A DNA stretch of 64,000 nucleotides from Bugula neritina (GCA_964035545.1 OZ037773.1:3005751-3069750); one strand, 5' to 3'; shown: positions 1,620 to 61,200, counted from the first letter of the stretch. Translations and numbers: made by a program. Notes: generated from the letters alone by a model not told the origin.

Positions 1620-2120
1620 CGAAGTCTAACAGTAACTCTTACTCTAACCCCACAAGTGACACTCACACTGACAGTATTTCTCTTACTCTTAGGTTTTTAA
1701 TTATTAGTATTTTTTTTTAAAAAAAGTTCTAGTTTTTAACGGCTAATGCTTGAATATAAATGACAGAATATCGATAGGCCACACGATACTCATACTCATA
1801 CTGACTCATACTCATAGTCAGTCATACTGATTGTAATACTTGAGACCCAGTCGTAGTCCGTAGCGGTAGTGAGTCCGTAGTCGTACTGATACTGATTATG
1901 ATACCATTATCACTACCTCATAATCATAGATTAATTTTAATAAACTTTATATTAATTATATTGATGCACTTGCAGTCTAGTGATGGTCTCATACTCTTAG
2001 TCTACTGAATACTCAATATCAAACTGAAAGTGAATCTGAATGCAGATTTGGTACTAGTTAGTGTTACTGATAGCGATACTGATAGTGATACCGATTGAAT
2101 CCTCAGGGCTCAGTGTCGTA
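1620..2120. repeat. 6-bp periodic NWN-A[C/G]T tract between DDX31 and CIAO2B
   Basis: For example catact catact catact gact catact catagt cagt catact; gatagc gatact gatagt gatacc. Confidence 0.75.
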
Positions 2121-2503
2121 CTCATTATTTTAGTTACATATTTGTTATTGCTCATGCATTTATTGAGTTTTTTGACACTAGTATTTTAATACAAACACGA
2201 ATGGCGATATCTAATTCTATGGTCAATATCATTTTATTTTTATTATAAATATGAATTTTAACTAATACATAATTTAATTATCATTATGATCAGCAATATT
2301 TAATAATATGTAGTTATCAGTTAAAAATTTAAAATATTAAGCTTACTAGTTTTATAGACTAAGTATAGAATAATTTTATATTGAGCTTATTTCAAATTCA
2401 ATTCTGATTTTTGTCTTGTATTAGCATGATGTTGATTTATTGTTAACATCTATTTGTGAGACAAACCAATGTATTGTTTTCAGCATACACAGTTGCTTCT
2501 GTC

Positions 2504-4503
2504 ATGGACAACACAAATCCCGAGATATATAAAATCAGCAGTGAAAGAGAAGTTACGCAAACAGAGCTTTCCGATGACGTTGAAGATGAATTCGACAGCT
2601 GGGAGGTGTTTGATATTCTAAGATGTGAGCATTACTTGGTGGTGATGTCCATCATTGGATTTTAATGAAATAAAATTAAGATATTTTCACTGACTTACCA
2701 CTATTTAGGGTAGTAGCTGCAAACTTTAAATCAAACTAATTGAAGTATATTGCCAATATAAGTCGTGTCATTAGTTTTATTAGAAATTGATAAATTCTCA
2801 AATTTTTACTCTTATATTATAATATAAATATTAACGCTTATATTAAAACTCTGTAGTAAAACAATGGCCAGTTTATTTTGTTGTCATCTGCAGTTATGAT
2901 ATAAGCTCTAGTCACTAAAACTAGTGCAATAACTAGCTTAACCTTAGTATCCTTGTGTGTTCCGAGTAAAAGACAAAATAGCCTGTTTTAAGTGTTTAAG
3001 ATTTTTTATAGTCCTTTTAGCATTTCTCATGTGATTGCCATAATTTGAATGCAAATTACAATTGTTTAAAAATAGCATATTGCCTAATTTGGCTTCATTA
3101 TGCACAATAGGCTGTTGCACTATGACAATATTGGTATTGCACCCAGTTTTCAACTGATTTGACACCTTTTTGTTTAATTGTGTAACAGCAAGTATTGCAA
3201 TTTTAAAAAATATATCATTTTTTATGTATTTATTAATTATGGTATCTTGCTAATACTTTGCTGCTTAAGTGTAAGTTCACAGCTGTAAGGGCCAACATTA
3301 TTGTCACTAGTTGTTTACAGAGAATTTGTGTAGAGAGTTGCATGCAGGTTTCTTATGTTTCAGCTATTAAAGACCCAGAGCATCCACTCACACTGGAGGA
3401 GCTGAATGTTGTTGATAAATCTTTGATTCAGGTAGTCAGCATGCTATAGTATATAGGTCAACCTTATCTAGGTCAACATTAACTAGGTCAGCTTCATATA
3501 GGTCAACCTTATGTAGGTCAGCTTTATCTAGGCCAATCCAATCTAGGACAACCTTATCTAGGTCAGCTTTTTCTAGGTCATCTCTATCTAGGTAAACCCT
3601 ATCTATATAGGTTTAGACTGTTCAAATCACAAGTATTGTGTCAATCATAATACTACAACCCTAAGGATGTTATAGCCTATGTTAAAGAGACTGGCTTTGT
3701 TTAATATTGGTTTATTTTGGTTGTTTTGATTTTTTCTCCATTCAATGGTTATTTAGGTTTTTAAAAAAGATACTGTTAATCTTTTCTAATTTTAACCTTC
3801 AGTTCTCGCAATTTTTTAATAGCTGGTGTAATAATTGCATAACTCTACAATTAAGCAAGGAAAGAGTGAGTTGTGATGCTAATTATTTTTAGACATAATA
3901 TGCTATTTGAGGAACTTTTCAAGAATTCTATAAAATAATATATAATATGTGTTGTGTTGTATTTTAGTTCATGGGATATCTGGAATTATGTTATCATCAC
4001 TTTCAAGCTGAGTAAATATGTAATAATTATAAAGAATAACATATGCTGCAGGTGGATAACAAAAATAATTCTATATCAATACAATTCACACCCACAGTTC
4101 CTCACTGTAGTTTGGCAACTCTGATTGGTCTATCAATACGAGTGAAACTAGTGAGGTAAGTGTATAATGAGTTAGTGAGTTTGATTGCAATGTTGAATAT
4201 AATGGAGTATTGAGAATGAAGTCATAAATACAGTAAGAAAATAAAATGCCAAGTTGTACATTGTCTGATGAATCTTGCAGCCTGAAACGTAGAGTATGTG
4301 TGTCCTTGATTGGCTGCAGTCACTAGTTACATGGTTGTAGATCCTTGCCGCCAAGGTTCAAGGTTGACGTGAAGATAAACCCAGGGAGTCACGTTTCAGA
4401 GATTGCCGTAAACAAACAACTCAACGACAAGGAGAGAGTCGCTGCAGCTTTAGAGAACTTTGATTTACTTCGAACTGTCAATAGATGTTTAGCAGAAGAA
4501 TGA
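2504..4503 (+). CDS. CIAO2B: Cytosolic Fe-S assembly component 2B (MIP18/FAM96B)
   Basis: Exons 2504-2624, 3364-3431, 4052-4155, 4341-4503 splice in frame. Motifs [36 protein letters not shown] and [17 protein letters not shown]; the N-terminal DNTNPEIY favours 2B over 2A. Confidence 0.93.
3451..3605. repeat. 15-bp minisatellite (about TAGGTCAACCTTATC, about 10 copies) in CIAO2B intron 2
   Basis: Tandem degenerate units read directly. Confidence 0.85.
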
Positions 4504-5379
4504 GCAGAAATTTCGGCAGTGAAAAGTTTTTTAAAGAAGGGAGCGCCATTATTTCTTCTTGCATCATTGTCATCATTTACTGAAATAATATTTTTGTACT
4601 TTTATTTTTTTACAAGTATCGATGAAGTTGTTGAATGTGATTGGTGCTGAAATTAAAACCTTATATAAAAGCAATATTCTGTGGAGATATTTCTACCATA
4701 TATAATACTTGCTCTAATATAATGTAAGCTATAATGTTGACGCTTTGCTGGGTGGGTTGTATTGTATTTTGCAGTTTTCTTTTTAGCATCTACTAGTTAT
4801 TATGATGTTGAAAATGTTTTTAAAATATTTCAGCTCTGCTGGCAGTCATTATTAAAACCTCAATAATTTAAATTATTACAACTTGTCTTTTTGTGATGGT
4901 GTATTTCTGTAGCCTAGATTGTCCTCCATCTCTCTATTTTAACTACAAACTCATCAACGCCACACATACCTTGCATATTACAATAATTAAGAAGAACTGT
5001 TGACGTATTCTTACCTACTGAACTGAAACTCTATAGCTCAATGCTCTTACCAGCTACGCTGTAGATTTCGAGTTATCTCATCATTATTTCAACAAGCTTT
5101 ATAAAATTAAGGATAAATGCGTAGTTTGGTTATTCGGTCAAGGTCAAAACAATATTTCCGGACTCGCAAGATATCGGGTTGATATTGACTAGTACTGTCA
5201 AATTTTTATAGATTCTTGCAATATTGACTGTAAAACTTGCAGGTATGTATTCAAATGTCACTCACAGAAAACATGTGTATTTCAATAATTTAGTTAAAAC
5301 CGTATGGGTTACAGTGCATATTTTCTCAAAAATGATTATATGAATCCGGTATTGCAGCTATTGCTAATGCTATTCTGAA

Positions 5380-6290
5380 TAGTATAACATTAACTGTAAC
5401 ATTAACAGATTAACTATTAGTATTACTATGAGTATAAGTTATACTTATACTATTACTATAAGTATAAGTTTAAGTATTCAATATGAAACTGAGTCTGATG
5501 GCATACACTTGAAGTTGGATAAAGATAAACTAGAAGTGAAAGTTAATCTTGTCCTTAGGCGTAGACTTACTCACCTAGAAATAGATACTAGATAGGATTA
5601 TGCTTTACTTTTACTTTTAGACCCAAAAGTAAATGATAAAAGACAATAAATTATAGTGAATAAAAGGCCAAATTGAAATTGATAAATATTATTACCAAAT
5701 TTATATTGATATTAATATTATTAATATTATAATTATTTTTATTATTATTACTATTACTATTAGGTTTCAATCGAATTTTTGTCATGATCATGAAGATTAT
5801 AATCATTTATTATTTATTTTCATTTTGGCTAGTATCAAATACAATAACTGATAAGAATCACAATTTGTTAATTATTTATATTTTATACTTATAGTTGCAG
5901 TTATAATCAATGAATTACAGTAATCATAATCACAATCATAATCACAATAATAATGATTGTTATAAATTTCAAAATTCAGGGTAGGCCTAATTTGAAAATG
6001 GATCATTATAATTAATAATTAATGTTATATACTTATAGTTATACTTTTTTATTTCATTCATCATTAAATAATAAATGATTGCGATTGGTAATTGAATTAA
6101 GCTGTTTTTATAGTATTGCCATTGGATTTGCCTTTGGTATAACATTAACATAAACACCATGTTAATCTATAACTATAAGTATATTCCTACTAGTATTACA
6201 CTATTAGTATATTACTATAACTATTGCTAAGTCTAATGTCTTGTAGTAATACTAATAGTAGTAGCCTATGGCTATAATAATAATTACAAG
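5380..6290. repeat. 6-bp periodic NWN-A[C/G]T and AT-rich tract in the putative first intron of tropomodulin
   Basis: attagt attact atgagt ataagt tatact tatact attact ataagt. It follows a candidate donor CAG|GTATGT at about 5241. Confidence 0.65.
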
Positions 6291-9007
6291 TCAAAAATAA
6301 AAGTGTTTTAATATTATATTGTTATTCATTCTTTATAAATATTAATATCATAATGGTAATGCACAATGCTAGCAATAAATCAAGAATAATTTTAAATTTA
6401 AAAGCTAAAATGTGAAACTTTCACTGTTGGTACCGGTGACACTAAGTATAAAAATTCTAATCAAATTAGCATACTTACTCATCACTTTCGGCTATCACTC
6501 ATTGACAAGTCAAAGTGTCATACATTTACAAATGATTTTCTCCCATATATTGTTAATTGTTTATAGTAGTAATACTACTACCATTTAAACATTACTCTGT
6601 TTCACATGTATGACTTGCATACTCTTTTATTATTTTAAGTTGCAATTGTAAAAGTAACTATGTAGCTCTGATTATATCTTTATAAAGCGTAATATGTCTT
6701 TAAGATTTATTCAATTACTTATTTCATGGGGCTTTTTTACTATGTTGCAAATGACAATTTATTTGGTATCTAATGCCATCGTGGCTCATTTTTAGCTTAA
6801 TGACTACTTGCATCTGCTTTTTACTTGACTAAACCCTAAATCCAACTGATGTTTATGTTATATTGCTCCCTATAATTTATGTAAACTGAGGTAGTAGAGG
6901 CGAGGTATAAATATTTGGGTCAGACAATAGCTTCTTCTGCAATACTGCACATTACTATTTTATTTCAATAATGTTTTTAGCTTTAATTATTTAAATATTA
7001 GTAAAGTTAAATACCCATGAGTTATTTTGACACTGTTTGCCTTCTATCACTATTGTGAAATCTAAACATTTGCTTCACAAACTTTAATGTGTCTTTATTA
7101 CAAATTGCCTTCTTATTTTTCTAATAGACTGAGTCACCTAGATCATTGCCCCCCTCCATGTCTTTAGATAGGGAGTAGTGACCCAACATTAACACATGCT
7201 AGTTCAATAGAAATACCTAGACTGTTCTAAAGAATGTCAACTTTCTCATTTGTCTTGAAAACATGAATGTTTCTTAGTCAGCAGTGTTTCCAGTGTCTAA
7301 AGCAGTTGTAACTTGCTAATGTTGAGTAAAGCTTCAACACTGGATATAGTGGAACCTTTCTTTGTTCAACAACACTTTATCTGATAGGCATTATGAATTT
7401 TCAACAATCTGTTAGGAGAGTGTATACAGAGCATAGATTCCTTAATGGGATCAAAATTCTTCTTCAACTCATTACTTATCTCATTTCCCACTAGCTCATG
7501 CCTATTTAGTTGCTTAGATTGCAAATTGAACCTAGCCTGTGCTGTAATTTACTCCATGTAAGCAGTAGACATTCCAATGTGGCAGACACATTTTGTAAGA
7601 GCCAAGGCTAGCCTGTGTTATCTCTGGATATGTTTGGATAGCATTTTTATGACTTCTCTCCCATCAGATAAACAATTACTAGGTGATACAAATGAGCTAT
7701 TACATCATGTTTATGGGAACTCATTTCATGGGAGATCGACTTACTGTGTAGTGCAGCATGCTATAAAATGTAATCATTGCTTATAGGCTCTGTGTAATGC
7801 ACACTTCATACCTAGCGTGTGTGCTTGGGCTGAGATATCTCATACTCTGTGTTATTTCAGCTGCCGTAGCTTCCTCAACCTGTAACTGGCTGTCTTAACC
7901 CCCCCCCCTCCTGTCTTAGAAACCTGATATGTCACTAAATTTATGACCCTGTAACGATAGGCTGATTTTGTACTTTAATTTGGCAATTTCCACCAATTGT
8001 TTCTTTCTTGTTTACTAAATGACACCACTATTGATTTCGATGGTGGAAGACAGTTGGCATTATATGCTAACAGTTGGGTATCTTATAGCCCTATGCACTG
8101 GCTGTAGAAAGTTCGGCTAATAATGTACACTTTAGATTATGACCCTGATTTGTTCTTATATTATAATCATTTCTCTTGGCTTGGAGTTCAGACTGACGTT
8201 GAAAACTAAGCCCTAGATCTAATGCCCCTCTTTGTTACAAAAACTCGTGCCAGCATTATCTGGTTAATACACAAGTATAAGATAATGAGATTATGATGAA
8301 CAGCAGCTAAAGCTGGTAGTTGAATTCCTCCATTAATTAAATACTATCTTTTGTTTATAATATAATGAATAGAAGTGAATATTTTAAGCCAGATTATGAC
8401 ATGCACTGCAGCTTATTCTTGCTTCTGTTATATTATCATCTATAGTTATATTTATATTAGTAACATTTATATTATAGTACTAACTATTAGTCCACAGTTA
8501 TACTGCAGTACTAAGTATTAGTAGAAGTTATATCATAGTCCTAGGTATTAGTCAACAGTTATACTGCAGTTTGAGTGCCAGTAGTAATAATCAACTGTTG
8601 GCTGATCAACAGTTCTGTTGCCTTGCCCTCACTCTGTCATTAGTTGTAGCTTTTTATTCCATTGACTTTGCTTGACCCTGCTATTGCACACTCATTAAAT
8701 AACATATTGGCCTGTCAAGTGTTGTGATGTTAAGGAAGGGCTGTACCCCCTCCTCCTATAGTAAATAGGGTGTGCCCGTAATGTTATTCTCCAGTGTAAG
8801 CTATCATGGGGCACTAGCTGTAGCTGTACTCCTGTTTATGGCTACTACTTCACTTTATAGCCCCTTTCTGGGTTACAGGTTCAATATACATGGCTGCAAG
8901 CTATTGTAACTTAAAGAGAAAGATGTTTCATAAACTTGGTGATGTGTTTTGTAGGCTAACTGTTTTAGTTGACAGTGTAAGTAAATCTTCTGGTAGCCAT
9001 TATGGAT

Positions 9008-9178
9008 GAGTCATTCTATGAGCAGCGCTGAGTTAGGGGTGACTGAGTGCAGTAGTTTGGGTTCTCGGGTTTGGGGTTCTCGGATTGAGTTGAAGCTTGA
9101 ACCCTCAACTCCAAACTCAAAAATCTCAAACTACTGCACCCAGTCACCCCCAACTCGGTGCTGCTTATAGAGCGACTC
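9008..9178. mobile_element. Short hairpin MITE-like element, copy 1
   Basis: GAGTCATTCTATGAGCAGC...GGGGTGACTGAGTGCAGTAGTTTG is mirrored by CAAACTACTGCACCCAGTCACCCC...GCTGCTTATAGAGCGACTC. Confidence 0.7.
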
Positions 9179-9530: not shown

Positions 9531-9678
9531 GAGTTGTTCTATATGCAGCTCCGAGTGGGGTGACTGAGTGCAGTAGTTTGCACTGACAAGTTTGGAGTTG
9601 GAGGTTTAAGTTGGAACTTGGAACTCCAAACTCCAGCACTCGGTCACCCCTAACTAGGAGCTGCTTGTAGAACGATTC
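9531..9678. mobile_element. Short hairpin MITE-like element, copy 2
   Basis: Same arms as copy 1 (GGGGTGACTGAGTGCAGTAGTTTG ... CACTCGGTCACCCCTAACT...GCTGCTTGTAGAACGATTC). Confidence 0.7.
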
Positions 9679-10369
9679 ACACCAGCATTCCTAATTCTGA
9701 GCTTATTGTACTACCACTCAGTCTAGCTGCCTGTATTTTTCTGCAATGTTTAGCTAATACCACTGTTTTCTCACCAAGCATTCCTTGACTCTTGTGTCAT
9801 TAGTTTATGTCAGCTAAGTCTTTCTGCTGCCAAGTCTATACTGTCCACCAGTAGAAGATTTATCTTTTCTTAGCAATTTTCAGTTAGCAGTAGATATTTG
9901 GACCACCATGTTACTTCTATTCTGTATCTTCCAGACTACAATATCAGCATTGTTGTACATCACTATTAGATCTGCCTGCATATTACCTGGATAACAGGTA
10001 TTCAGGGTATGGTGTCATATCGTAGCTAGTAAAGATGTGATTAGTAGAACTAATTGGATATTATCTTCCATGGCTAGCATACCCTAAATATCTACTAGTC
10101 ATGGCCTTTCACTAGACATCCTCTGCATTAGAATGGCAGCAGTAAATGTTAACTATGCTGACTGACATACATATGCAGGTGCTACAGGGTGCTATGAGCA
10201 GTAAAAGTGTGTATTTACTGGAATAGCTGTAATGAAAACTCTCTTGGCATCTATCACTGACATAGCAGAGACCATATTGTGGGGACACCGAAATAATACT
10301 GAGATGCCATTCAAACTTTGTATTTTGTTCCTCTATTAGATAATGTAGTCTCAGCATTTCATAGATATA

Positions 10370-10735
10370 AGTGTACCAGGTGCTAGAAGGCCTTCAGAGT
10401 ACAGCATAGCACACAGTGTACCAGGTGCTAGAAGGCCTTTAGAGTAAAGCATAGCACACAGTGTACCAGGTGCTAGAAGGCCTTTAGAGTACAGCATAGC
10501 ACACAGTGTACCAGGTGCTAGAAGGCCTTTAGAGTACAGCATAGCACACAGTGTACCAGGTGCTAGAAGGCCTTTAGAGTAAAGCATAGCACACAGTGTA
10601 CCAGGTGCTAGAAGGCCTTTAGAGTACAGCATATAGCACACAGTGTACCAGGTGCTAGAAGGCCTTTAGAGTACAGCATAGCACACAGTGTACCAGGTGC
10701 TAGAAGGCCTTTAGAGTACAGCATAGCACACAGTG
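10370..10735. repeat. 45-bp minisatellite, 8 near-identical copies
   Basis: Unit AGTGTACCAGGTGCTAGAAGGCCTTTAGAGTACAGCATAGCACAC repeated head-to-tail with no spacers. Confidence 0.95.
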
Positions 10736-10784
10736 CAGCTCTCTTTTCAATTCACCTTTCTCTTTGACTAAAACTCAAAATGTG

Positions 10785-11000
10785 CTCTACTGCACTCTGT
10801 ACCACTGCAACACTAGTTCTTACTCCACTCTACTGCACTCTGTGCCACTACAATACTAGTTCTTACTCCACTCTACTACACTCTGTACCACCACAAAATC
10901 CATCCTATTTCCACCACACTCTGTAACACTACAATACTAGTTCTTACTCTACTACACTCTGTAACACTACAATACCAGTTCCTACTCTACTCTACCGCCA
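10785..11000. repeat. Degenerate 40-43 bp tandem repeat ending at the tropomodulin splice acceptor
   Basis: Recurrent ctctactgcactctgtaccactacaatactagttcttact units. Confidence 0.75.
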
Positions 11001-11011
11001 CTCTTGCAGAT

Positions 11012-14000
11012 ATGACTGGAGCAGAGACAGACATGGATGCTCCATGGGCTAAGAATATGGGTGTCGCTGCGTTTGAGGAGTTTGATATTGACGACCTGTT
11101 GGCTAAGCTGACGCCAGAGGAGATCGAAGAGCTCGCCAACGAAACCGACCCAGACGTGAGTAGCCATGTTTGTTGTGCCGTCGCCCACTTCAGGTTGATT
11201 CCTATAGTAACTTTAAGGTAGATGGGATATTGTATGAGGATAAGTTGAAACAGCAACTTATTCATCAAAGTTCAGCAAAGCTAAGTTATAACTTGTATAA
11301 GTTTTAACTTGTAAACAGGTTGGTTTTACTAGAACTTTCCATATTTTATACACTTTAGCATGGTTAAAATTGCTGTGAGTTTTGTTCCAATTTCAATGTT
11401 GTCAAAACATTGGTGAGATTGTCTTAAATTTCATGTGACTATGAATTTATCAGTGCAGCTATATGCAGAATAGTGTGGTTATAGCCTCCAGCTGTTGGTC
11501 TATCAACTAATTCTCTATCTCTTACAGTTGTCGAGTATTTCAGATGTTGGCAAGACTTTGGCTTCACTTGTTCAGTAATTAGTGTAGAAAAATTCATTTA
11601 ACCATTATTTTGACAGTCAGTCATGAGTTTTTAATGGAAATGTATTTTGGATTCAAGTTCGGATAAGTTAGATGTATCGTTACCATGACAACCTATGGGG
11701 GTGCAGTGAAATGCGTTGGCCTATTGGGCCTAGTAGTGAATGACTGTAGGCAGATTCAACTAACATATAATAGTATAGTCAGCATTTTCAGACAACTTTG
11801 TGCCTTAAGTTTTCCTCCCTTGAGGTGTTGTCAGCTGAACTGATGTTGTATCACTTAGCTGACTTGGCATACACAATCCTATTGAACTGATCAATAATAA
11901 AATATTGATATTTATCTGGCATTGTGTAACTCAGAATGTTATGGCTGAGGCTGTTCCTCAATTTTTGTTTCTGGACTGCAATAAAAAGTTCAAGTCTGTG
12001 AAAGTGAGCTGGTAAGAAAATAAAATCATAGGTAGGGTTTATGTTTTAAAATCAGCGCAAGTTAGTGTTTTAAATAATAGACTGAGTTCTCATATGTTTA
12101 CAGAACTCCTTACTACCACCCGCAGACAGGTGTAAAAATCAGACTACAAAGTCGGACACTGGGCCACTGAACCGAGAGGCTCTGCTAAAGTGGCTGGAAG
12201 ATAAGGCACTCTCCGAGGCAGACTGGGATGAGCCAAAACCCTACACTAAGGTAACTGGAACAGTCTCTCAGTCTATGATCTCATCATGTTGTAAACCCTC
12301 TACTTGAGTTACCTTCTCTTGTCATTTGGGTTTACTGACTTGATAAAGAGCATCTCAATGCAGTGCATAGCATGTCCTTGTTGCCACACCTCACCCAGCT
12401 AATCCCCATAACAGAGTCAATGAACTGCTATTGACTCTGGTAACCTCCGCAAAGGTTAGTTGGTGGGCAGTAAACTCTATGAAGGCATGTAAAGTTATGA
12501 TTCTAACAACTAAAGATGAAGTGTGGACCAATATGGTTTTGGTATTCCAAATGCTGTTCAACTCCTGAGATATTGAACTAAATTTCTAAGAAAAGCCAAG
12601 AGGGCAATGCTTAATGCTAATAACACTCCCCTTCCCAAGATTTCAAAAAATTATAATATATGCATTTTTTAATTACATTTAAAATATTGACTCCCTATTG
12701 AATAATTCAACTTTTACATTGTTATTTAAATACAATGGGCAATATAAAAAGTTTTAATATTTCAAATTACATGCGGAGATTGGAATATTATTTTAGTTGT
12801 AATCCATTACTATTAAATCTAAAACCCTAATGAAAACCAGGCCGTCTGTTTCTATAAAAATTCAACGGTTACAGTGAAACGAAAAACATACCAATAAAAC
12901 AGTATTTCAGTACTTAAAACCCTCACCAACAGAATTGTGGTATATGTAGATAAAGAGAGGGAAGGCGTATGTGCCAAAGGATTCAGATACCAATATTGAT
13001 GACATAAGCGAGAACTCCGGGGAACTGAAAACAGATTTTGATGACATATTAAATAAGGCAACAGAAGAAGAGCTAGTTGATCTAGCAGGTATCTTTTCAT
13101 TATCTTATAGTTTAGTGCCGTCAGCATATAATTTGATGACATCAGCACATATTCTGGTGACATGTGCACATATTCTGGTGACATCAGCACATTTTCTGGT
13201 GACATCAACACATATTTTGGCGACATCAGCACAGTCTGGTGACATGAGCACACATTCTGGTTACAGTAATATATTTAAACCATGAGACATTATTACATAA
13301 TTGGTCGCATGATAGCATTATGACTGACTCAACATTACACATTGTAGCCGCTCTTGGATTTCATGCCATGTTGAATCAGGACCAGTACAATGCCTCAGTT
13401 CTCGAAAAGCCTGTTCATGGAGGGTTTAAGGGTATCGCAAAGGCCACCCTGCCTGCTGTCTCGGAACCTGTTGCTCCGAATAGCACAGATGTTGATAAGA
13501 GTATAGAAAGGCTGACTAGTAACGACGCCTCTCTCACAGAGCTTAATCTCAATAATATTAAGGTTGGTCTTGTTGAAGATCCGTTCTCTCTTGTGATGTC
13601 ATAAGTTGATGCCGCTTGTTAATTGTTTTTATTACGGAAGAAAGCTAAAAGTTAACATTCACTGCTGATTTCTTGTGGTATGACAACTCTCCAAGTGTTG
13701 GAAGAGATTTGATTATGTAACTCGTACGCTTTTTTCTAGAATATTTCTGCACAGAAGTTTGAGAGGTTGTTTTCAGCAGTAGAATCCAACACACACCTGG
13801 TTACCTTAGCCGTGGCCAGTACTGGTATCACAGATAGGGTGGCAAAGGTGAGCAGCTCTTAGGACTATTTTTTCGAAATACCATTTCAAGCTTCTAATAT
13901 CCAGTGATGAATATTTTCTTATTTGCTTTTCATAACAACTTAGGTCAGCTAAACTATATAGAAAGAAGTTCAAGCTGCATCCGTAAACTTGCTTATGATT

Positions 14001-14927
14001 TCTGAGGCAGTTGTGGTTGTTTCTAGTTTCTAGCCTCAGCTATTCAGGCGAACAGGTCACTGAGGGTAGTGGTAGCCGACTCCAACTACATCAGGAGAGA
14101 CATGGTTCTAGAACTCGTGTCGTCTGCTGTCAGTGGAAACTCGCTTGTGGAACTTTCGTTAGAGAATCAGGTAAAGATAACTCCCAACAGTGTGCAATGT
14201 CGATCTAACTATTGCCTGAAGCATATTATTGGTCTATTACTGCATTGTCACTAAAATGTTTATTATTGAAAAAGTAATTTTAATTATATATTATCCGTCG
14301 TTGAATTCAATAGAAACATATCATTGTCTATTAATAGGAGCATATTATTATCTAATGTTAGAGGCATCTAATGGTCTATCATTAAAAATATACTGTCTAT
14401 TGATAGAAAAATATCTATGAGAAATATATTGTCTATTAAAAGAAACCCATTTTACTGGGGGTGAAAGCAGAGCAAGAGATTGCTAAGATTATAGAAAGCA
14501 GTGAAACCATAGAGAAGCTTGGCATACAGTTTGAAACATTGAATGCTAGGATCAGGGTACAAGACAAACTACAGTCCAATTATGATAAAAGTAAGTTGTC
14601 ATGTAAACAACACAATTGATTTACTGTATAATGTAAAATTTTGTGGTGAAATGCATTGGAGTTATCTTCTCATTGAACTTGCACTTTCTTGATATTTATA
14701 AACTTCATTTCTTCATCTCACTTCCACATTGTTAGGAAATATTATTTACTTATGCCTATTGCATTGGCAAAGAGTTAGTATACTACTGGTTCAGTAGAAT
14801 TAGCTAAATTAATTTGTGATTCAGAGTTGTTTTCTCATGATCTGTACTTTTTTCAATAGTGGACAACTCCAAACAAAACTTTATTTTCACTACATTTTTA
14901 GGGCGCAAACAAAGAGCAGATATCTGA
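11012..14927 (+). CDS. TMOD: Tropomodulin
   Basis: Exons 11012-11155, 12104-12250, 12950-13088, 13348-13562, 13740-13847, 14027-14170, 14443-14590, 14902-14927, all in phase. Motifs DIDDLLAKLTPEEIEEL...DPDNSLLPPADRCKNQTTK, ATEEELVDLAAALGFH and the LRR segment PNSTDVDKSIERLTSNDASLTELNLNNIK. Confidence 0.95.
13133..13262. repeat. 21-bp minisatellite (GTGACATCAGCACATATTCTG, about 6 copies) in a tropomodulin intron
   Basis: Tandem units read directly; they explain the spurious repetitive ORF at 12852-13253. Confidence 0.85.
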
Positions 14928-15760
14928 GAGCCTAAAAGATTTTCAAGAAGCCTGAGTTTACTTTAAGCTATTCAGATGAAGCCGGGTGGGCTTGTGCTCT
15001 GCCTAATTTAGTAGCCTATAGTTTCGGTTTTTTCTATACATCAATTTATATTCTTCCTCTGCAATGTTAGCCTCTGCCCTTTAATATGAATATAGAGCTT
15101 CTGATGTGTGGATCCTCCCTGTATGTGTCAAATGATTGTAGTATTTTTCTAGGCATATGTTAGGTTCACAAGCCATATTTTAGAAAGCTTGTCTTGTTAT
15201 AGTAAACAATTGTATTTGTGTTGTTTTTGTTATTTTATTTATGGACACCAGAAACTTGTAATGAATGTAATCTTCTATAATAATTTATTTTTTATTGTGG
15301 GTTATTAATTTTTTAACCTCCTGTATAGCCGCATAGTAGAAGTCTGTCAGCTCTAATGGGTTGAGGATCATTCATAATGTTTTGTCTGACCAACTGTCTT
15401 ATTTCTGCACCAATCCAACACTTTTAGTATATTGAAGAAAATCATGCAATTTTAGGAACTATTTTACGTGCAAGTTGCTTATAATATGTAGTGGCATAAG
15501 TCAATTTATCTTCAATCCTGTAAATTTATTTTATTATAGCTGTAAAATTATTTATCAAAAATCATTGCATAGCTTCAATAAATGTCTGTTTTAAAGAAAA
15601 TTGTGCTTTTGTTTAAAAATGACTAGATATGTTGAAACAGAGATTAGAATTTTCGAATCATTGCAAAAACATACATTAATAGATTAGAGATTTGAGGTTA
15701 TTTTGGAAATAGACTAACTGAACATTTTGGCTAAGCGCTGGCTCTGGCATGCTGTGTCCT

Positions 15761-17476
<1,716 letters not shown>

Positions 17477-17529
17477 TTTATTGGTACGAGTGTAGCAGAT
17501 AGAGATACTCAGATAGAAAATAAAGCTCA

Positions 17530-17830
17530 TAAAAATTTGTCACGGGAACTGATTGGACACGTGTAAAGTTGATGCGCTGTTTTGTCCCTAACCTTAGTTT
17601 TACTTACATATTTTCATAATTATATGCGGTGGGCACCGAGATTAGCACCAACATCATAACGCGGGAAATCGCTCGTTTTAAATACTGGTTATATGCATGA
17701 GCGATGGTGCGGTAAATTAAAGATATTTTTATCAGTTTGAAACTAATTAAGTTGTAAAACTAAATGGTACAATTACTATTAGTATTAGCAACCATTTGTT
17801 GTAGTGGTTAGCACGAAACTTGAGAAAACC
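17530..17830. promoter_or_regulatory. Probable bidirectional NENF/EXO1 promoter
   Basis: Locally CpG-containing segment between divergent genes. ATTGG (reverse CCAAT) 17552-17556, E-box CACGTG 17558-17563, E2F-type GCGGGAAA 17661-17668, CHR-type TTTAAA 17677-17682 and TTTGAA 17736-17741. Confidence 0.55.
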
Positions 17831-17889
17831 ATGCGTTTTTATTTGACAGTCTATTTTAAATAACTTGATTATAATTTTATTTCCTCTGA

Positions 17890-33802: not shown

Positions 33803-33816
33803 TCGCGTATTTCAAG

Positions 33817-38161: not shown

Positions 38162-38172
38162 GGTGGGGGCGG
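38162..38172 (+). promoter_or_regulatory. Polypurine tract
   Basis: GGTGGGGGCGG immediately before the 3' LTR. Confidence 0.75.

Positions 38173-44582: not shown

Positions 44583-44586
<4 letters not shown>

Positions 44587-44640
<54 letters not shown>
44587..44640. repeat. (TA)n microsatellite
   Basis: Read directly. Confidence 0.97.
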
Positions 44641-44644
<4 letters not shown>

Positions 44645-49060: not shown

Positions 49061-50701
49061 AATTACAGTAAGCTCAATTTATGTTACAGTTGTGTCTTCT
49101 GAAGTCATAAGTCAACTGCAATATTCAGCAAGTTTTTGGTTAAACAGAAATGAAATCAACAATGAATATATAACAAATAATCAATGTGCCTGCTACCTTG
49201 ATTGGTGGACTATTAATGTTTACTGCAGATGTGTTGATCCAAATAATTAGAGTTGGTATAACTAGCTTGTAGATTTGGTCTGTGTACTCAGCTTTCATAG
49301 GCCATTATATCACCATGACTATTGTCAAAACATTTTACAGTGACTTAGTAAATAATACTATTCGAGTATATATATATCATAATTTTCATTTAGCAAACTT
49401 ATAGTATTTCAAATATTGTATACAATGATAGAGTACACTATCACACGTAACACAAAGTATAGAATGTAAGACATGATTTATTGATTATGTTCTCCAGTAT
49501 GGAAAATAGAATGTAATAATAGTATTACATTCATTTAGCATTGCATAATGTTATCGCTGCTTATAATAATTAGGTAATGTTGTAAACTTTTATTTATTTG
49601 TTGAGACGCATATAAACAGTCTCTTCTGCCGTTTCATCAGGAAAAGTTATTACTTTTCTTTTCATTTAGGCATCGTCAGTTTGAAAACATAAAATTTATT
49701 GGTAAAACAAAAGCTATAATTAATGAGAATGGGAAATATTACGTATAAATGAGTTAGTCAGTGTATTAATTTGCATGTTCAAAGTTGTACTGTAATATTT
49801 TAATGTTATACTAGTTATAAAAGGTATAAAAGTCATATTAAAGCTGCAATTTAAATGAAACTAAGAAAAGGTAGTATAAATCAGTTACTCAGTGTTTTAA
49901 TTAGAATAATATATTGAAGTTGGAATTTGACTCAAATTGTTTTATGTCCAATAGTTATATTTTGTTTTATTATTTGACATACTGGACTTGTGTTTACAAG
50001 AATAGTGTCGTTTGTTTTAGATGCTAACAAATACTATATAACTCATTGTTTTGTGTTTTTTGTTGTACTGCTGGTTATATAATTTGTAAGAATATTTATT
50101 TTTGTTGTTGTTATATGTGTAAGATCTTGTTTATATAAAAATGACACGGGCCAATGAGGACGATGTCACAGTTTGTAACTGGATTTATTTGAAATAGTTC
50201 AGCAATAAAAACCAATGGGAAAGTAATAACAATATTGGCTTTTTTTTCTTAACCCTAAATATATGAAATAATTGGATACATTCTGCAAATGATTATGAAA
50301 TAAAAAAATTTAATAAAGAGCAATTTCATTCTTTATCTGAGCATATATACATGTGGTATAATAATGAAATAAGGTACAGTTATTATAATAAAATATATAA
50401 ATAACTGTTTCTCATAACAAAACAAAACGGTATTGGATTATAGTCTGTTACCAATATGATACTGAACCCGGTTTTCCTAGCAGAAGAAAAATCTAGAGAG
50501 TTATCTTCTCTCGATGAGCTGACAACTCCTAGTATAGCAAGTTATTATTCCTGCAAGCTAAATTATGAAGATAATATGAAGGTGTAAAATATGTTGCAGT
50601 TTGTAGAGTACCTTACAGGTTTTCAGTAGTTAACAAACTCCATCTGTGCTTAAGACTGTATCACTCATACGCTCATGAAAATACGAAACCATTTCATATA
50701 T

Positions 50702-50789
<88 letters not shown>

Positions 50790-51470: not shown

Positions 51471-54400
51471 TCAGTAAATACTGTTGGTGATGTCAAGAGG
51501 AGCATTCATGCAGTCAGTTTCTCCTGTTCCACATATAAATAAGTTCTTATATTCTGTCATATGAAAATCTTTTCCTTCAAGGTTTCTCGAAGGGATATGG
51601 ACTACAATGTTTCAAGTGAGTATTAGTTCGGTGTGAAAGTCATCATATATGTTTAAAAGCAGTGTTAGAGCTGATACATTGACAATGTTTTGTAACAGCA
51701 CAGTTACTATAGCTAGAACTGCTAATATGAGCATCTATAATTGTTGGTAGTAACATTGCATGAACTGAAACCATACTTCAATAGGTAGTAATGCATCATT
51801 GTTTATCATCATATATGAGCGGAAGATTATATCCTATCAACAACCACTGTATGTTAAGGGTTACAGTATTTTTTTCAAAGACATTAACAATGAACTCTTT
51901 TTCACAAATACTATTTTATTTAAAATTATTTGAACGTATATAAACACAGTATTCTTGTCATTTAAAACTGTCTTTAATGTTTTAATGAGCCATTCAATGG
52001 ATAATTTAGAAATGGGAATATTGAAGTTGCAGCCTATTATTTGCTCTGTGGTTATTTTTGTTTTCCCAGCTCACTTACACAGTGCATCACACGGCTTTTA
52101 CGACTGTCAGGGTCGATCCTCATTTTGCCATTTCGCGATATTAGCCGCAATAAACAATATATTTTCGTGCGATAACATCGACTGTCTAGGGCGCTACTGT
52201 TGACGAATCAGAACAAAGAGAGCACATGAGTGCTGTAAACATGTACGTGTTGTTATGGTTACTAATGATGATCTGCTACGTAATTTTTGTAGTAGACAAC
52301 TCTCACAGAAATCATTAATTTGTCTTTTCCTTATTTAGCTAACAACTTTTGCCTAGAAAAGAGAGAAGGCAAGGTGGCTCAAGCGATGCTGTATTTTTTT
52401 AGAATGTTTTAGCTTAAATTCTGTTTGGTTTATCCTACTAGAATGTTACCTGCTGCAGCATCAACACTATCATTGCAAAACTATATCTACTTATAACAAA
52501 ATCTTGATGCCCATAGCAAAATTATATACTTTATTGTGGCGGATGTGCAAGAGTTTGGAGTCATCTCATCAATTACACATAGCAACAGAAGAACACAATA
52601 TAGAAATAACAGAAAGCCAAAGACGGTATACCTTTATTTTTAACCAAGAAAGAATTTTGTTAAACATTATATTGTTAAGTTCACCATAAAAAAACTGATT
52701 TTACAAGTGGTTACATCTTTTCCGAAAATAAAGGTGCCATGAAGCAGCCGAAAATGAAGTCGTCCGCTCACCAGACACCTAAAAAATAATTATGCAACAT
52801 GATATTTTCAAAATTAAACACAGATATGCAACAGTCATCACCTACATAATTTTTTATAAATTTAACAAGCTTGTTTAGTGAAAGTGTATAATACAAACAC
52901 TAATGTTGATAGCGAAAATGCCATGTTCATGCAAGATAGTAAATCAATATAAATAAGAAGTCATATCATATCTATGTTATATATGTATTCAATTCTGGTT
53001 TATGCTTTATGCCTTCAACTATGAGTGCACAACCACTAATCCTATTTCTACCAACACCATCTCTACCGCTAACAGTACTAACGTCAGAACCAAAAACAAC
53101 TTCACCACTACTACTAATAATTCTATTATTTTATTATTATTACTTCTACTACTATACTACTGCTACTGCTACTACTACTACTACTAGTGCTACTGCTACT
53201 GCTACTACTACTTCTACTACTGCTGCTGCTGCTACTACTTCTACTACTGCTACTACTGCTGCTACTACTACTACTGCTACTACTACTACTGCTACTACTA
53301 CTTTTACCACTACTAATATTGTTTCTACTACAAATACTGTAAATCTTACCAGCAGCAAGTTATATTGGAAACTGTTTGCTCATATTTTTATCATTGTATT
53401 AGTGCAATAACAAAATGTTTATATTTTAATATAGTCAAACCTTTTAAAAAGCTACGCTGCTACTTATGAACTAAGAAGTTGTGCTACCCACCTTGATATG
53501 CACTCAGCTCTAACACCAAGCAGGTGGTTATGATGCTTCTCCACAATAGCCAGGCTATCCAGCTGTCCGATTGTATGCATCTACGTAAAAATTATTGGCA
53601 TATGGTGCAAGAAATGATTAAAAACCAGATAGGTGTGCTAGAATTTATACAGCATAATATAGAGTAAGGTAAAAGAGAACAGACCGTCAAGTGGTACAGC
53701 ATAGAAACAATTACTAGCTATTATATGCTTTATAGAAGTTGGCAAATTGTAGCCCACTAGATATGAACTTTAGTTAGCATTTTATTTTGGCTTTCAGCAA
53801 CTGCTTTAATCACTGATCTTGGTAAAACCAATATGTTTACAAATTAACACCTCCACTAGATAGGTATACAGGTCAAAATATTCCAATTGGTGACATACTA
53901 AAAGAAAATGTATATTTATTCATTTTTAAAAGATTGCTAATAATTTATAAAACAGCGTCGAAATCACTAAAGTAACAGCGCAAATAAGTTTATTAAACAG
54001 CATTATAGGATTGCCTATTACTAGTTTCATGATTTCTATTATTTTACTGGTTTCAAACATAATATAGGCTGAAAAAGCAATATTAGTTCTCTCACTTTTG
54101 CTAACTACATTGCTTGGAAGGCCATCATAATTAGATTAGATCAAACAAATGTGTTGACAGGTAGACTGGAACAGGCCTAAAATTTGCAAGGTATAATTTA
54201 AATTTATCTGGCCTGAAATTGCTGAAACTGACAATACAATAATATGAGAAACGAGCAGGGTTTTTTATTAAAGCTAGCAAAAATAATTCCTCTACATATA
54301 ATTAACATACAGTCCATACATATAATATATTACTATGTCCAGGCAGCAGTGCTTGTTCTAGCCAAAAGAAAACTGATTTAATGGCTGATTTTAATGGCCA

Positions 54401-55149: not shown

Positions 55150-55670
55150 CCAAAATAATTCGGCTTTGTGAACTAGCAAATATGGACAAACAAACACCCT
55201 AATATTCACGCCAAAAGAAAAGTCTACGCAGTTGGTGTTCTCAGCATTCTTCCTTGTGAATCAAAAACATGGGCAACATGTGGACTGCAAGAATCAAAGC
55301 TCAGCACTTTTCATACCTGGAGTTTAAGATGCATGTTGAGTAAAATCTGGGAAGATAAAATGATAAATGAAGATGTATTTGAAATCACAGACCCGGATTC
55401 TCTTTCTTCAAAACTGAATTTCTTCTGTCTTCACTGGGCTGGTCAACATGCCAAAGTATCTCATCCGCCGCACTCGATTGCATGCATTAATATCAAAAGG
55501 AACTCATCCAGCTAGAAGAACTTATATCTAAGGTTTGAGGATGTCCTGAAACAAGAGCTTAAGGAATTTTACATAAAATCCAATCAATTTACCACCTCTC
55601 AAATGGAGGCAAAGCATTCTTGCAGGATGGGCATTCAACACTGGAAACAATATAAAGGGAGCTATGGCTA
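55150..55670 (+). mobile_element. Degenerate RTE-type LINE 3' fragment
   Basis: KVYAVGVLSILPCESKTWAT...KLSTFHTWSLRCMLSKIWEDKMINEDVF...CLHWAGQ matches the post-RT region of RTE elements. Confidence 0.7.
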
Positions 55671-57089: not shown

Positions 57090-58270
57090 GGCTATAAGTG
57101 TAAGTATAATTATCACTATAAAACTAAGTGACTGATGAGTTGGTACTTGGTAGAATAAACATAAAATGAACATAAACAATCATAAACTAAAACACCATTA
57201 CATATATGATTTATGACCCTTTGGTTTCTATTTTTAATTTTAGCTTTACCTTGTCTTTTGGCATTGGTTATAGTATTAGTTTAGGTTACACCACTATCAG
57301 TTACTATGACTATGAGTATGAGTGAGTAGCCTTGCCCGTAGAACTAGGAGTAAGAGTAGATCACTAGAAGTAGAAGTATGGGTATCGGGGTGTGACTATA
57401 AGTATAACTCATAGTCATAGTATGATTATCTTACTGAAAGTGATACTCATAAACCTCAAGTGATAATCATAATGATACTCAGCATGACATGTAAGGTGTA
57501 TGATAGTCAGTCTCGGTTATACAGAGTAGAATATCAAACTTTAAGTTTAACTGCTACTTTGAAGTAGGACTTAGACATCACCATTTATGGGTATGTCATG
57601 CCGTCATAGACTATAGACATAGTATAAGGTTCTAATACTATAAGTATAACTATTACTACTATAAGTATAAGTCTTTAAGTTTAAGTATAACTATATTTAC
57701 TATTGATTAATTTCGATTTGATACTATTACTATTACTATTAGTAATACTGTATTAGTATTAGTATTACACTTTACAGTATTACTATTAGTATTAGTTGAT
57801 CCCATACTGATAGTGATACTCATACCACTACCATTATGATTATGATTAAGAGTACTACAGTGAGTTATACTCACAGCTATACTGATTACTAATTTAAGAT
57901 CACTCTAATCAGTAACTGTTATCACTAAGTATTAGTGGATTATTTATCATTTTATGATTTTATCATAGTCATAGTGAAACTGATTGAGTAATACTTATAG
58001 TTATAGCTATATTCATATTGGTAGTGATACTGATAGTGATGCTGATAGACTTAGACTTAGAGTGTGAGTCAGAGTGAGAGCGATATTCATGTTTATAAAT
58101 ATGATTATAACTAAGACTAAGAGTAAGAGCAAATGTAAAGTCTAATCGTGACATTATAACTATTACCATTAGTGCATTCGTATTACTATTAGTATTAGTA
58201 TTACTAATTATTAATCTATTTTCCAATAATAACCATGCATATGCCCTAGCCTATAACTATAAGTTTGAGC
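57090..58270. repeat. 6-bp periodic NWN-A[C/G]T tract next to the CpG-containing patch at 58270-58620
   Basis: tatgac tatgag tatgag; catact gatagt gatact catacc; gatact gatagt gatgct; attact attagt attagt. Confidence 0.8.
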
Positions 58271-61200
58271 ACGCCTATGGTATTCAAAATTGAAATTGAA
58301 TCTTTGGGTCATTTGACCAAAGGAGCCGCGGACTCAATTAGGCATTGGACCTTGGGGGCGATTCTAGTGTTCAAGTAGAACCGATATTCGGTCAAAACAG
58401 GTCTGGTCTATCATGGTGGCCAGTAATTTATCTGCGCAAATTTACTCGACTCTTGTGTTCATAATAAACTCGGCCTGACTACTCCGCAAATGGGGCGATA
58501 ATCATAAATTTCATAATAATATATTATTAGAGACTAATTTAGTATGTATACACATGTCGGTAATTACAATCTAGTTCCATTCTTCAGGAAAACCCATTAC
58601 GGATCAGGTTGGTACTATTGCTATTAGGTTGAGAATATTATTAGTAAAACAATCACAATGTGCTCATTTTTGATATAAATTATTATTACTACTAGTACAG
58701 TAGTAGTACTAGTAGTAGTAGTACTCTAGTTACTAGTACTAGTAGTAGTAGTACTAGTAGGCCCACTAGTAGTTATGGTGTCTAATACCTTGATTGAGAA
58801 CTGTGAAAATCATTAGATTTAGTGATAACAGACTACCACTGTAAGTCTGTAAGTGCTTTAGTACTAGATGTACCACAAGTATCAATGCTTTAGGTTTTTA
58901 TGGTGTTAAATACTCATTTTTTACAGTGATTGTTATTTTATTGGTACGTGTTCTGTTACTTGTGAGTATTGTTACAATTCCAAATGAATAAGCCATTTTA
59001 AGTAAATACTCTTATACGGTGTGAATATTGATATGAATTATATGTTTCACATTTACCGCTATAGTTTTATCAGTATGATATACATTTTTTTAATAATAAT
59101 GATCATAAAACATCATCATTAAAAGTGTAAAGTTTTACTCCACTTTTTGGGACCAGTTGCTGCTTCTGGTAGCATAGGTAGAGTCTTTGCTCATTTATCC
59201 TAACACACTAAGGTTTGAGTTTTATCTTTATTGCAACATCCAAAAACCTTTGCCGACCTTGTTCTTACAATCAACTATGAAACCTTGTGAGTCTATGCCT
59301 AGTAGATGCATTACTGATAAATAACTAATAATATCTGCTTGTTATATGGGGAAGAATTTTTTGCATAGTAATTTTTCTCGTGTTTGTATTTTGATTTTTC
59401 TAATGTCAATATACTTAAGAAATATCCTGGAAAGCATTTTTTGCCAGTTCATTTCTTCTCTTTATTTCTTGTTCATTTTAACCATGCAATATCAGTTATT
59501 AACTCTCCAAGGTATACTGTTTTAATTATTCGTTGCTCTGGTGTAGCATCTAGGATGGTGTTGATATTAAGTGTGGTGCAGACTTTTTGAAAATCATGGC
59601 TTTTGTTTTAAAACCTTTCTTATCCATATCACAAAGTTTTCTTGCTTGTTTACCGCAATGAGTCTTAATCTAAATAAAAAAGCAATATTTGATCAATTAA
59701 ATTTTCAATCTGAAATTGGTTTTCAAACTGCTTTTGCCATTTAGTGTTCTTTTGCTGATGCTATATTAATGTGATTTTAAAAGGGAGTTTGCTGCGTTAT
59801 TAGATGTACTTATAATATGGGTATTTAAGTTCAATGGGAATATAAATATCCTTTTCATTATTGAAATGTTCACAATGACAACTCTGTTCATATGAGCTGC
59901 TGACTACAACTTAAAAGTTATCTGTTTGGAATGATTTTTATAGACTCTTGATAATGATTGCGTATGATTTACAATACAATACTATTTACCAACTATTGTT
60001 CGATGGTCACATGTCTTGTTTTATTTTTTCATCTTTTTTGTTTTCAATATGAGCAAACAAATAAGAATTGTATGGGTACGTTAAATTATTATTTAATTTT
60101 TCAGAATATTTCAGTTGGTGACCACTGTGGAGGAATTGAATGGAAAGCTGCAAAGACGGTTTCAGGCACTTATATGTAAGGCATTGGATATGGAGAGAGG
60201 GAGATCTGTGCTTATCCTTATATAATGCAAGTAAGTTAATTAATGTATTGCTGGCTTTTATTTATATGCATATAAAGTTTGTTTAGTGACTATTTGTGCT
60301 TGAAATTATTTGCAAAATTTAATTTGTCCTCTGCTTATAAAAATCTATTCAGAACTTTTTGCCTGTAGAATCTTCAACGTTTTAATTATATTTTTTTGGA
60401 GTTTTAGAAACAATTTCTTGGTACACAATCTGTTGCTACCAATGTAAGGTGACGGTACTTCTCTTGACTTCTAAAATGCAAGCAAAGCTTGTTTCCTCTC
60501 ACGATTACTTTTTGAGTGTGATGTTCGCTAAGGCACACATTTGAACATGTCAGTTACTACACTTTAATAGATGTTTTAGTATTAGATATATTTTAGTTTT
60601 AGGTAACATGAAATATTGAAAATAATGTATGCGAATCTGGTGAATGTTTAGACTTCAACTACCCCTATGCAAATGCAGGTTTAAACCATATAATCAAACT
60701 AAAAATCAATTATTTTTCTTTATATTTGATTTCTAGTTTTTTAGGTGAGAACTTGTTTTGTTTTGTTAAAAATTGTGGTTGGAAAATATCCTTATTCACC
60801 AGGCCACAGCTGCAACATTTACACTGCATGTCATCGTGATTTATGATTGAAGGCTAAGTGCAGTGGTAGAGTGTGGCAAGGCATAGGTCTAAGTACTGAA
60901 GAGACCACGGAGCAGAAAAATATTTATATCTCAAGATGTGGCTTGATTACACAGCATATGAATTATGATGGTAACAAAATATATGCCTTTCAACTTTAAA
61001 GTTTTTTTAAGCTTGCATTAATCTTATTCAAGATAGTATCTGTCCAAGCATTTAACAGCACATTGTATAAGGTTTTGCAAATGTTATTTAACTTTGTTTA
61101 CTACTTGTTTTTTGCTATTTTCAACAACTCGAACATGCCGCCAGTTTTTGTAATTTTCAAACAAGAAATTTCACAAACTCCATCAAATTGATTCAAATAG

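Follow-up and report, generated by a model that had tools for sequence, protein, structure and literature searches.

Patchworks of tandem A[C/G]T hexamers near gene 5' ends in DNA of Bugula neritina

A stretch of 64,000 nucleotides from Bugula neritina (GCA_964035545.1 OZ037773.1:3005751-3069750), referred to here as the window, contains tracts in which ACT or AGT recurs every 6 bp while the three bases in between vary. These tracts are non-coding, lineage-restricted patchworks of short tandem (A-[C/G]-T-N-N-N)n blocks near gene 5' ends. They are probably a by-product of DNA transactions in promoter-flanking chromatin and not a selected code. A first-pass annotation, made from the sequence alone, had put forward both a promoter sequence code and a mutational process tied to promoter chromatin; the latter is the better supported of the two, because conserved spacers together with scrambled C/G fit a DNA process that generates units.

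Extent and internal structure of the tracts

The autocorrelation of A[CG]T in the window exceeds expectation 3.2-fold at lag 6, 2.7-fold at lag 12 and 2.3-fold at lag 18, and is flat (0.7-1.2 times expectation) at lags 4, 5, 7 and 8, with 0.90 times at lag 10. The recurrence of A[C/G]T every 6 bp in varied hexamers, as described in the first-pass annotation, is borne out by 415 lag-6 pairs in the window against 132±13 in order-2 Markov simulations. The same simulations predict 0.36 chains of at least four units, where 25 are present. Degenerate patterns of six and seven units give 5 and 12 matches in the window and 0 in 100 shuffles.

From the left to the middle of the window, a tract caller delimits 1621-2080, 5321-5580, 6141-6280, 17121-17300, 17821-18580, 32101-32800 and 33181-33480, and in the remainder 38521-38780, 57201-58220 and 58601-58860. 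The coordinates first proposed are thereby recovered, except that the segment given as 58680-58780 is a period-3 (A[CG]T)n variant, extending over 58680-58790, and not a hexamer tract. Two further calls, 8441-8620 and 40101-40280, are added to the original list. The tracts, to which no strand is assigned, are the following.

T1, 1621-2120: flanked by a possible gene start on the minus strand (962) and the start codon of the CIAO2B-like gene (2504)
T2, 5321-6290: 0.8 kb beyond the stop of the CIAO2B-like gene, with the TMOD start codon 4.7 kb downstream
T3, 8441-8620: borderline; in truth a 31-bp minisatellite rich in AGT/ACT
T4, 16700-17310: within the first intron of the minus-strand cytochrome-b5-domain gene
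T5, 17821-18580: between the divergent start codons of the cytochrome-b5-domain gene (17530, minus strand) and EXO1 (19289, plus strand)
T6, 31890-32800: 0.45-1.4 kb upstream of 31440, the probable start codon of RRP15 on the minus strand
T7, left half, 33181-33439: with an inverted duplication with 47-nt arms (33324-33370 and 33372-33418)
T7, right half, 38516-38780: beyond the retroelement that splits T7
T8, 40101-40280: small; contains a perfect 21-nt inverted copy of 38567-38587
T9, 57090-58270: the largest tract, with 18 blocks that draw on 12 different major spacers and with 32 C and 33 G
T10, 58600-58880: includes the period-3 (A[CG]T)n variant at 58680-58790

The two halves of T7 (33270-33439 and 38516-38740) had been listed together at the outset, and they indeed form one tract, interrupted by a young long terminal repeat (LTR) retroelement. 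Two trinucleotide arrays that mimic the lag-6 signal, (GTA/GTG)n at 25541-26060 and (TAC)n at 53061-53380, were set aside. The first lies in the EXO1 span, where a Ser/Gly-rich frame is open in the EXO1 orientation; it may represent low-complexity sequence that is translated.

Printed in register, a tract resolves into blocks of 3-11 hexamers, such as ACTttt/AGTttt, tatACT/tatAGT, catAGT/catACT, gacAGT/gacACT and aacAGT/aacACT, separated by register shifts and short non-repeat islands. The longest chain comprises 11 units, starts at 5413 and belongs to T2. The spacer consensus is A-W-T (position 4 A-rich, position 5 83% A/T, position 6 T-rich), and the preferred core context, T-A-[C/G]-T-A, fits WRCY on both strands. 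Strand symmetry and the lack of one repeated unit, both proposed from the start, are evident in the central base of the chains (114 C and 117 G) and in the 12 different major spacers found in the 57.3-58.2 kb tract alone.

Among self-complementary degenerate triplets, A[CG]T has the highest lag-6 excess, 2.85-fold against 1.0-fold at control lags. ACT and AGT can stand in for each other at lag 6, where cross pairs are enriched 3.2-fold (ACT followed by AGT) and 2.8-fold (AGT followed by ACT) and same-type pairs 2.6- and 2.8-fold. A[AT]T cannot take their place; it follows A[CG]T less often than expected (0.8-0.9 times). Neighbouring units are 74-81% identical at each spacer position (~78%), whereas their central C/G is equal in just 39-40%. 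The share of pairs with a flipped central base falls from 60% at lag 6 (p = 0.012) through 56% at lag 12 to 48% at lag 18. The differences between well-matched units comprise 131 exchanges of C and G, 78 exchanges of A and T, 68 transitions and 39 other transversions, and concentrate at the centres of self-complementary triplets (AST, TSA, TWA, AWT, CWG). At A_T centres of such units, 87 differences exchange C and G, against 8 of all other kinds (2 of them transitions); exchanges of A and T are frequent at the centres of self-complementary spacers.

The tracts share with microsatellites a head-to-tail unit of 1-6 bp, as Tandem Repeats Finder (TRF) reports period-6 arrays, along with periods of 12 and 18, across all tracts and chains reach 11 units. 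The positive correlation between neighbours that a microsatellite displays at every position breaks down at the centre, with its 39-40% identity. If units were copied and later mutated, C/G exchange at the centre would have to outnumber all changes at a spacer site by a factor of at least ~6. The centre is not simply hypermutable, and the scrambling of C and G seems to arise when a unit is made, because AGT is invariant in a minisatellite of the window and inverted duplicates keep their C/G. In the minisatellite, with a 21-bp unit, AGT is kept in 19 of 19 units although other positions vary; inverted duplicates within tracts keep C/G at 12 of 12 sites, in pairs that were chosen for high complementarity and are subject to that ascertainment. 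The minisatellite (26693-27068, in the EXO1 span; 18-19 units of 19-21 bp) displays GT/AT slippage and G/A changes, and serves as an internal control.

Position near gene 5' ends and distribution among lineages

The window is gene-dense, with a G+C content of 33-35% and depleted CpG (observed/expected 0.49). Gene identities are read from translations of open reading frames (ORFs), and positions refer to start codons, not transcription start sites. The reference genes are given below.

CIAO2B/FAM96-like gene, 2504-4500, plus strand: start codon to stop, from ORF translations
Tropomodulin-like gene (TMOD), 11012-14616, plus strand: from ORF translations
Cytochrome-b5-domain gene, 15000-17530, minus strand: from ORF translations and a weak Pfam Cyt-b5 match in exon 15995-16153
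EXO1, 19289-28466, plus strand: from ORF translations, confirmed by a library-wide search
RRP15-like gene, 29480-31440, minus strand: from ORF translations and a weak Pfam Rrp15p match; start codon uncertain

Pfam searches of 20 ORFs from the right half of the window return a single PAN-domain exon only, and no gene could be annotated at the putative promoters of 38.75 and 58.3-58.6 kb. Rfam and tRNA scans return no RNA genes. Densities of lag-6 pairs, for which chance gives ~2 per kb, were counted over the few regions of the annotated left half.

Three intergenic regions with gene 5' ends: 12.3 (T1), 20.5 (T5) and 28.5 (T6) pairs per kb
Tandem intergenic region, CIAO2B 3' end to TMOD 5' end: 6.3 pairs per kb
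Two convergent 3'-3' intergenic regions: 2.6 and 1.0 pairs per kb
Gene bodies: 0.8-3.6 pairs per kb, about chance
Cytochrome-b5-domain gene body, with its first-intron tract: 7.1 pairs per kb

In this half, neither of the two 3'-3' intergenic regions contains a tract, and gene bodies are almost free of them. The start codons of the cytochrome-b5-domain gene and EXO1 lie 1.76 kb apart, 0.76 kb of which is tract. These figures, drawn from few regions and from start codons, support a link between tracts and gene 5' ends. The original proposal that tracts flank nearly every promoter goes too far: its core, the enrichment of intergenic regions that contain 5' ends, stands for the annotated half, but no tract lies less than 2.4 kb from the TMOD start codon (11012), and CpG patches at 41.6, 45.4, 48.2 and 52.0 kb have no adjoining tract. 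The region upstream of TMOD contains other repeats in place of hexamer tracts, including an inverted repeat pair (9007-9178 and 9531-9679) and, at 10370-11004, minisatellites of 45 bp x 8 (97% identity) and 43 bp x 5.

Orthologous EXO1 5' regions are available on metagenome contigs of two related taxa (L005-L007 and L008-L015). The closest relative of EXO1 exon 1 shares 93% of its amino acids (L005-L007, from an assembly labelled BRYA16-1), and L008-L015 share 84%. No tract is present upstream of exon 1 in L005 (2 kb) or in L008-L015 (0.5-1.1 kb), a comparison of one promoter among distant relatives whose exons are 70-82% identical in nucleotides. The absence of tracts in both relatives is evidence against a conserved code, and the sequence code of the first-pass annotation is not supported. 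The lineage restriction claimed there holds; the same grammar was also encountered in one unrelated metazoan.

This second organism emerged from a metagenome scan with the six-unit pattern, which matched at least 120 stretches. Among the matches listed, most are regular 12-mers or nearly homogeneous arrays, many of the regular 12-mers being probably coding, and 25 come from Joint Genome Institute (JGI) samples Ga0224501 and Ga0224511 and represent one CpG-depleted metazoan, whose contigs are tied together by common transposon families. The grammar of the window, with several blocks, different spacers and mixed C/G, is found at 13 of those 25 loci, and the period-3 variant is present as well. 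The organism has no detectable sequence in common with the window. The first coding exon of an ECI2-like gene in L029, which encodes an ACBP domain, has a tract immediately upstream, and in L135 a tract overlaps a probable signal-peptide exon that is SIL1-like by eye and has no Pfam match. At a tract on L083, L136 and L137, the three assemblies are 100% identical; they represent one data set assembled repeatedly, from which no allelic polymorphism can be read. On an unrelated contig of 52% G+C (L117, 2740-3520; Ga0099798_10765), 12-15-mers of the form AGTGAG ACTTTC / AGTGAG AGTTTC alternate between ACT and AGT at one position.

Possible origins of the tracts

One tentative explanation, possible though short of probable, is that each unit is the scar of one insertion-excision cycle of a cut-and-paste transposon. 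Its steps are inferences, none of which was observed in this analysis. An element would insert and duplicate a 3-bp target (NNN). Excision by 3-nt staggered cuts would leave the same 3-nt 3' overhang (5'-ACT) on each flank, the identical overhangs would pair as A·T, C×C and T·A, and random repair of the central mismatch would produce ACT or AGT. The gain per cycle would be NNN plus A[C/G]T, or 6 bp. Cycles that keep returning to one triplet would build up a block, and cycles at other triplets other blocks; the arrays would afterwards be reshaped by slippage of several units (periods 12 and 18) and by local inverted duplication. Their position would follow from a preference for open promoter chromatin combined with local hopping, and the period-3 variant from insertion into an earlier scar. 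A single process could in this way cover the 6-bp period, the spacers that stay constant within a block and change from block to block, the free centre, the strand symmetry, the register shifts and the patchy distribution.

Parts of this scheme have a counterpart in known transposons. Sleeping Beauty and mariner transposases cut 3 nt inside the element and leave identical 3-nt 3' overhangs on the donor flanks, and their canonical footprints, TACAGTA or TACTGTA, consist of a self-complementary triplet with either central base between two copies of the target duplication (PMC7827188, PMC6943129). The tracts resemble these Tc1/mariner footprints, TAC(A/T)GTA, in their self-complementary triplet, two complementary centres and strand symmetry, and possibly in target copies on either side (PMC6943129, PMC7827188). 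Known footprints, however, are single, their TA target is fixed and their core is CWG, whereas in the tracts the core would be A[CG]T, the target a variable 3-bp triplet and the scars stacked in tandem up to 11 times.

A footprint origin is consistent with several properties of the tracts. The triplet is self-complementary and accepts either complementary centre (the 87 to 8 excess given above), and the constant spacer inside blocks fits target copies flanking a footprint. Mobile elements land in or beside tracts, namely the LTR element of the window and miniature inverted-repeat transposable elements (MITEs) in the second organism. The distribution is patchy, covering the species of the window and one unrelated metazoan, with no tract upstream of EXO1 in the two relatives.

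Other results weigh against it. In the small sample formed by the window and ~190 kb of the second organism, no element with ACT/AGT termini and 3-bp duplications comes to light. A scan for perfect 11-mer terminal inverted repeats with a 3-bp target-site duplication gives 0 matches; a 9-mer version gives 8, the same count as control triplets, and a relaxed 14-mer version is swamped by quasi-palindromes inside the tracts. Isolated NNN-A[CG]T-NNN sites outside arrays occur at 1.4 times the overall rate, a value equalled by several other triplets, with 1.25 times in tract-free loci. At block ends, full matches between flanking target copies amount to 24%, a figure of little weight either way, as blocks are poorly delimited. 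The element must also re-target one triplet repeatedly, in up to ~10 independent cycles per block and hundreds per 64 kb. Footprints predict 50% flips between neighbours, where 60% are observed (p = 0.012), and they do not predict the frequent A/T flips at the centres of self-complementary spacers. To our knowledge, no transposon superfamily combines 3-bp duplications, ACT/AGT termini and 3-nt staggered excision. Because its direct predictions failed or gave no clear answer, the footprint model is held only tentatively. It is possible, though less likely than not, that the tracts are tandem stacks of footprints from an element with 3-bp duplication and ACT/AGT termini; they would then constitute a countable fossil record of transposition in the germline, aimed at open promoter chromatin, and a new origin of microsatellite-like DNA.

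A rather unlikely alternative involves neither a transposon nor a function. Compound microsatellites would be born by slippage, and an array-specific repair would flip the centres of self-complementary triplets; a candidate is the correction of C×C or G×G when A[CG]T of different units pair, in slipped or fold-back form. The many period-6, 12 and 18 arrays that TRF detects in the tracts are in keeping with slippage, and the differences between units are mostly of the complement type at all positions, mainly at the centres of self-complementary triplets. Neighbours differ above chance (60%), as pairing-driven correction would favour, and true inverted duplications occur in the tracts. However, inverted repeats are not significantly more numerous than in C/G-randomised tracts (56 against 48.8±5.8, p ~0.12), and most hexamers (such as ACTTTT, CATAGT and AACAGT) could form no more than 2-3 base pairs in 6 nt. 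Such a repair is also difficult to reconcile with the AGT that stays unchanged in 19 of 19 minisatellite units, and it gives no account of A[CG]T as the core of nearly all blocks.

One close known relative of the tracts is cryptically simple sequence, or compound imperfect microsatellites, reportedly described by Tautz, Trick and Dover in 1986. Both consist of scrambled short tandem motifs in non-coding DNA, with periods of 6, 12 and 18 and rapid turnover. Unlike cryptically simple sequence, nearly all tract blocks have an invariant self-complementary A[C/G]T core, and the centre is uncorrelated or anti-correlated between neighbours while the rest is copied faithfully, for which slippage alone is insufficient. 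Tandem repeats are likewise enriched near gene starts as promoter microsatellites of yeast and human (PMC3566118), and in this position the tracts are similar; those microsatellites are single-motif and mostly mono- to trinucleotide or GC-rich, and a common core with a flipping base, as in the tracts, has not been described for them.

It is unlikely that the tracts are selected site arrays for a two-fold-symmetric DNA-binding factor, or a nucleosome-excluding or boundary sequence that insulates promoters. Their concentration in 5'-containing intergenic regions, with none in 3'-3' regions, agrees with such a role, as does their recurrence beside first coding exons in the second organism (ECI2-like and SIL1-like genes). 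A fixed A-[C/G]-T core whose spacer is free to vary is what a protein that reads an odd palindrome symmetrically would accept, and because a period of 6 bp does not match the helical repeat, intrinsic bends would be expected to cancel. But tracts are missing upstream of orthologous EXO1 in two relatives, where a cis-regulatory module should be present at orthologous promoters, and TMOD and several CpG patches are without them. Moreover, tract length, block order and register are unstructured, and selection on ordinary mutations cannot scramble C/G to 40% while neutral spacers hold 78%. Of the novel readings, a promoter boundary peculiar to the lineage and recognised by a two-fold-symmetric protein is the less likely.

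The first-pass annotation had loosely likened the tracts to nematode periodic An/Tn clusters (PATCs); they resemble those of C. elegans as a periodic, non-alignable texture of certain gene neighbourhoods in one lineage. The analogy fails in its particulars. PATCs have a 10-bp helical-phase period of A/T runs and spread through introns, whereas the tracts have a 6-bp period, an A[CG]T motif and a 5' intergenic position, and internal introns are almost devoid of them; neither a ~10-bp periodicity of A/T runs nor a spread through introns is found.

That the tracts are pieces of one dispersed transposon or satellite family, for example its microsatellite-bearing tail, is very improbable. A MITE of ~650 bp does abut tract-like sequence at 5 loci of the second organism, but its termini (GGGTAGTGAG...) are non-periodic and tracts also occur without it. 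Self-BLAST of the window returns only short matches between hexamer blocks, with no common non-simple sequence adjoining any tract, and blocks vary in unit and register. No terminal repeats or target duplications bound the tracts, the sole bounded element being the LTR retroelement in T7.

Equally improbable are hotspots of AID/APOBEC-like deamination (TACT/AGTA = WRCY/RGYW) in transcribed promoter flanks. The T-A-[C/G]-T-A context matches WRCY on both strands and the tracts are near promoters, loosely in the manner of immunoglobulin switch regions, which lie downstream of promoters, abound in palindromic AID hotspots and are likewise promoter-proximal tandem repeats around a strand-symmetric hotspot motif. 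Deamination should produce C>T changes, yet A_T centres contain 87 C/G exchanges against 2 transitions, A[AT]T is under-represented 6 bp after A[CG]T, and the 6-bp periodicity is unaccounted for. Unlike switch regions, the tracts have a spectrum of C/G exchange only, lie on both sides of housekeeping-gene promoters, and no link to a deaminase was found for them.

Chance, assembly artefact or coding Ser/Thr-X repeats can be dismissed almost entirely: ACT does encode Thr and AGT Ser, and many metagenome matches are regular, probably coding 12-mers, but register shifts and stop codons break every frame and the tracts have no Pfam matches, the 5-12 observed pattern matches against 0 in 100 shuffles and the Markov simulations speak against chance, and an independent short-read metagenome assembly has the same grammar, which argues against an artefact.

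Literature searches on promoter microsatellites, PATC-type periodicity, bryozoan microsatellites, cryptic simplicity and transposon footprints turned up no A[C/G]T hexamer arrays with a free centre. The pattern appears to have escaped description so far, and a novel route to cryptically simple or compound microsatellite DNA is a serious possibility. If the tracts are mutational scars, they point to a promoter-targeted DNA process operating at the very high density of ~60 units per kb of tract, whose unit-by-unit record could be counted and dated and would bear on the origin of simple-sequence DNA and the expansion of promoter flanks. If they are instead read by a protein or shape chromatin, they would represent a compact, recognisable promoter-flank signal in an under-studied phylum. 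Any genome could easily be scanned for this rule, an A[C/G]T at intervals of 6 bp whose central base is left free.

Mobile elements and other repeats

The element that interrupts T7 is not part of the tract system.

Ty3/gypsy-type LTR retroelement, 33440-38515, plus strand: LTRs 33440-33782 and 38173-38515, ATAT target duplication

Its 343-bp LTRs are 99.7% identical, its target duplication is 4 bp long (ATAT), and its G+C content is 59%, compared with 33% for the genome. Its closest relatives are almost all on JGI scaffolds AY690838_*. The copy looks non-autonomous, because relative to the Bugula neritina-associated L002 it is missing ~1.4 kb that includes most of the reverse transcriptase / RNase H region, and it nevertheless looks very recently inserted. 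Two ORF fragments elsewhere in the window, at 39060-39323 (minus strand) and 55177-55512 (plus strand), resemble by eye the C-terminal tails of non-LTR retrotransposon proteins and have no Pfam match.

The ~650-bp MITE of the second organism has GGGTAGTGAGAAACTA as its termini, and its long terminal inverted repeats are built from subrepeats resembling GGTACATGGTTTCGAG. Copies directly adjoin tract-like sequence in L135 (440-1071), L076 (2932-3589), L080 (1415-1997), L096 (386-1462) and L087 (~2149-2615); either the tracts are favoured targets of the MITE, or both favour the same chromatin. The same organism contains a PIF/Harbinger-type transposon (L083, 3013-7685, equal to L136, 6159-10732) with a MADF-domain ORF and a DDE_Tnp_4 ORF, and a tract lies ~0.75 kb upstream of its first ORF.

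Several further repeats are present in the window. An inverted repeat at 63150-63304 and 63479-63633, with 155-bp arms that are 93.5% identical and ~175 bp apart, is a candidate foldback element or MITE. A dispersed repeat of 135 bp occurs at 30200-30335 and 41666-41797 (75% identity), the second copy coinciding with a CpG-rich patch that has no adjoining tract. Two (TA)n arrays of ~50 units each are located at 44574-44672 and 50696-50789.

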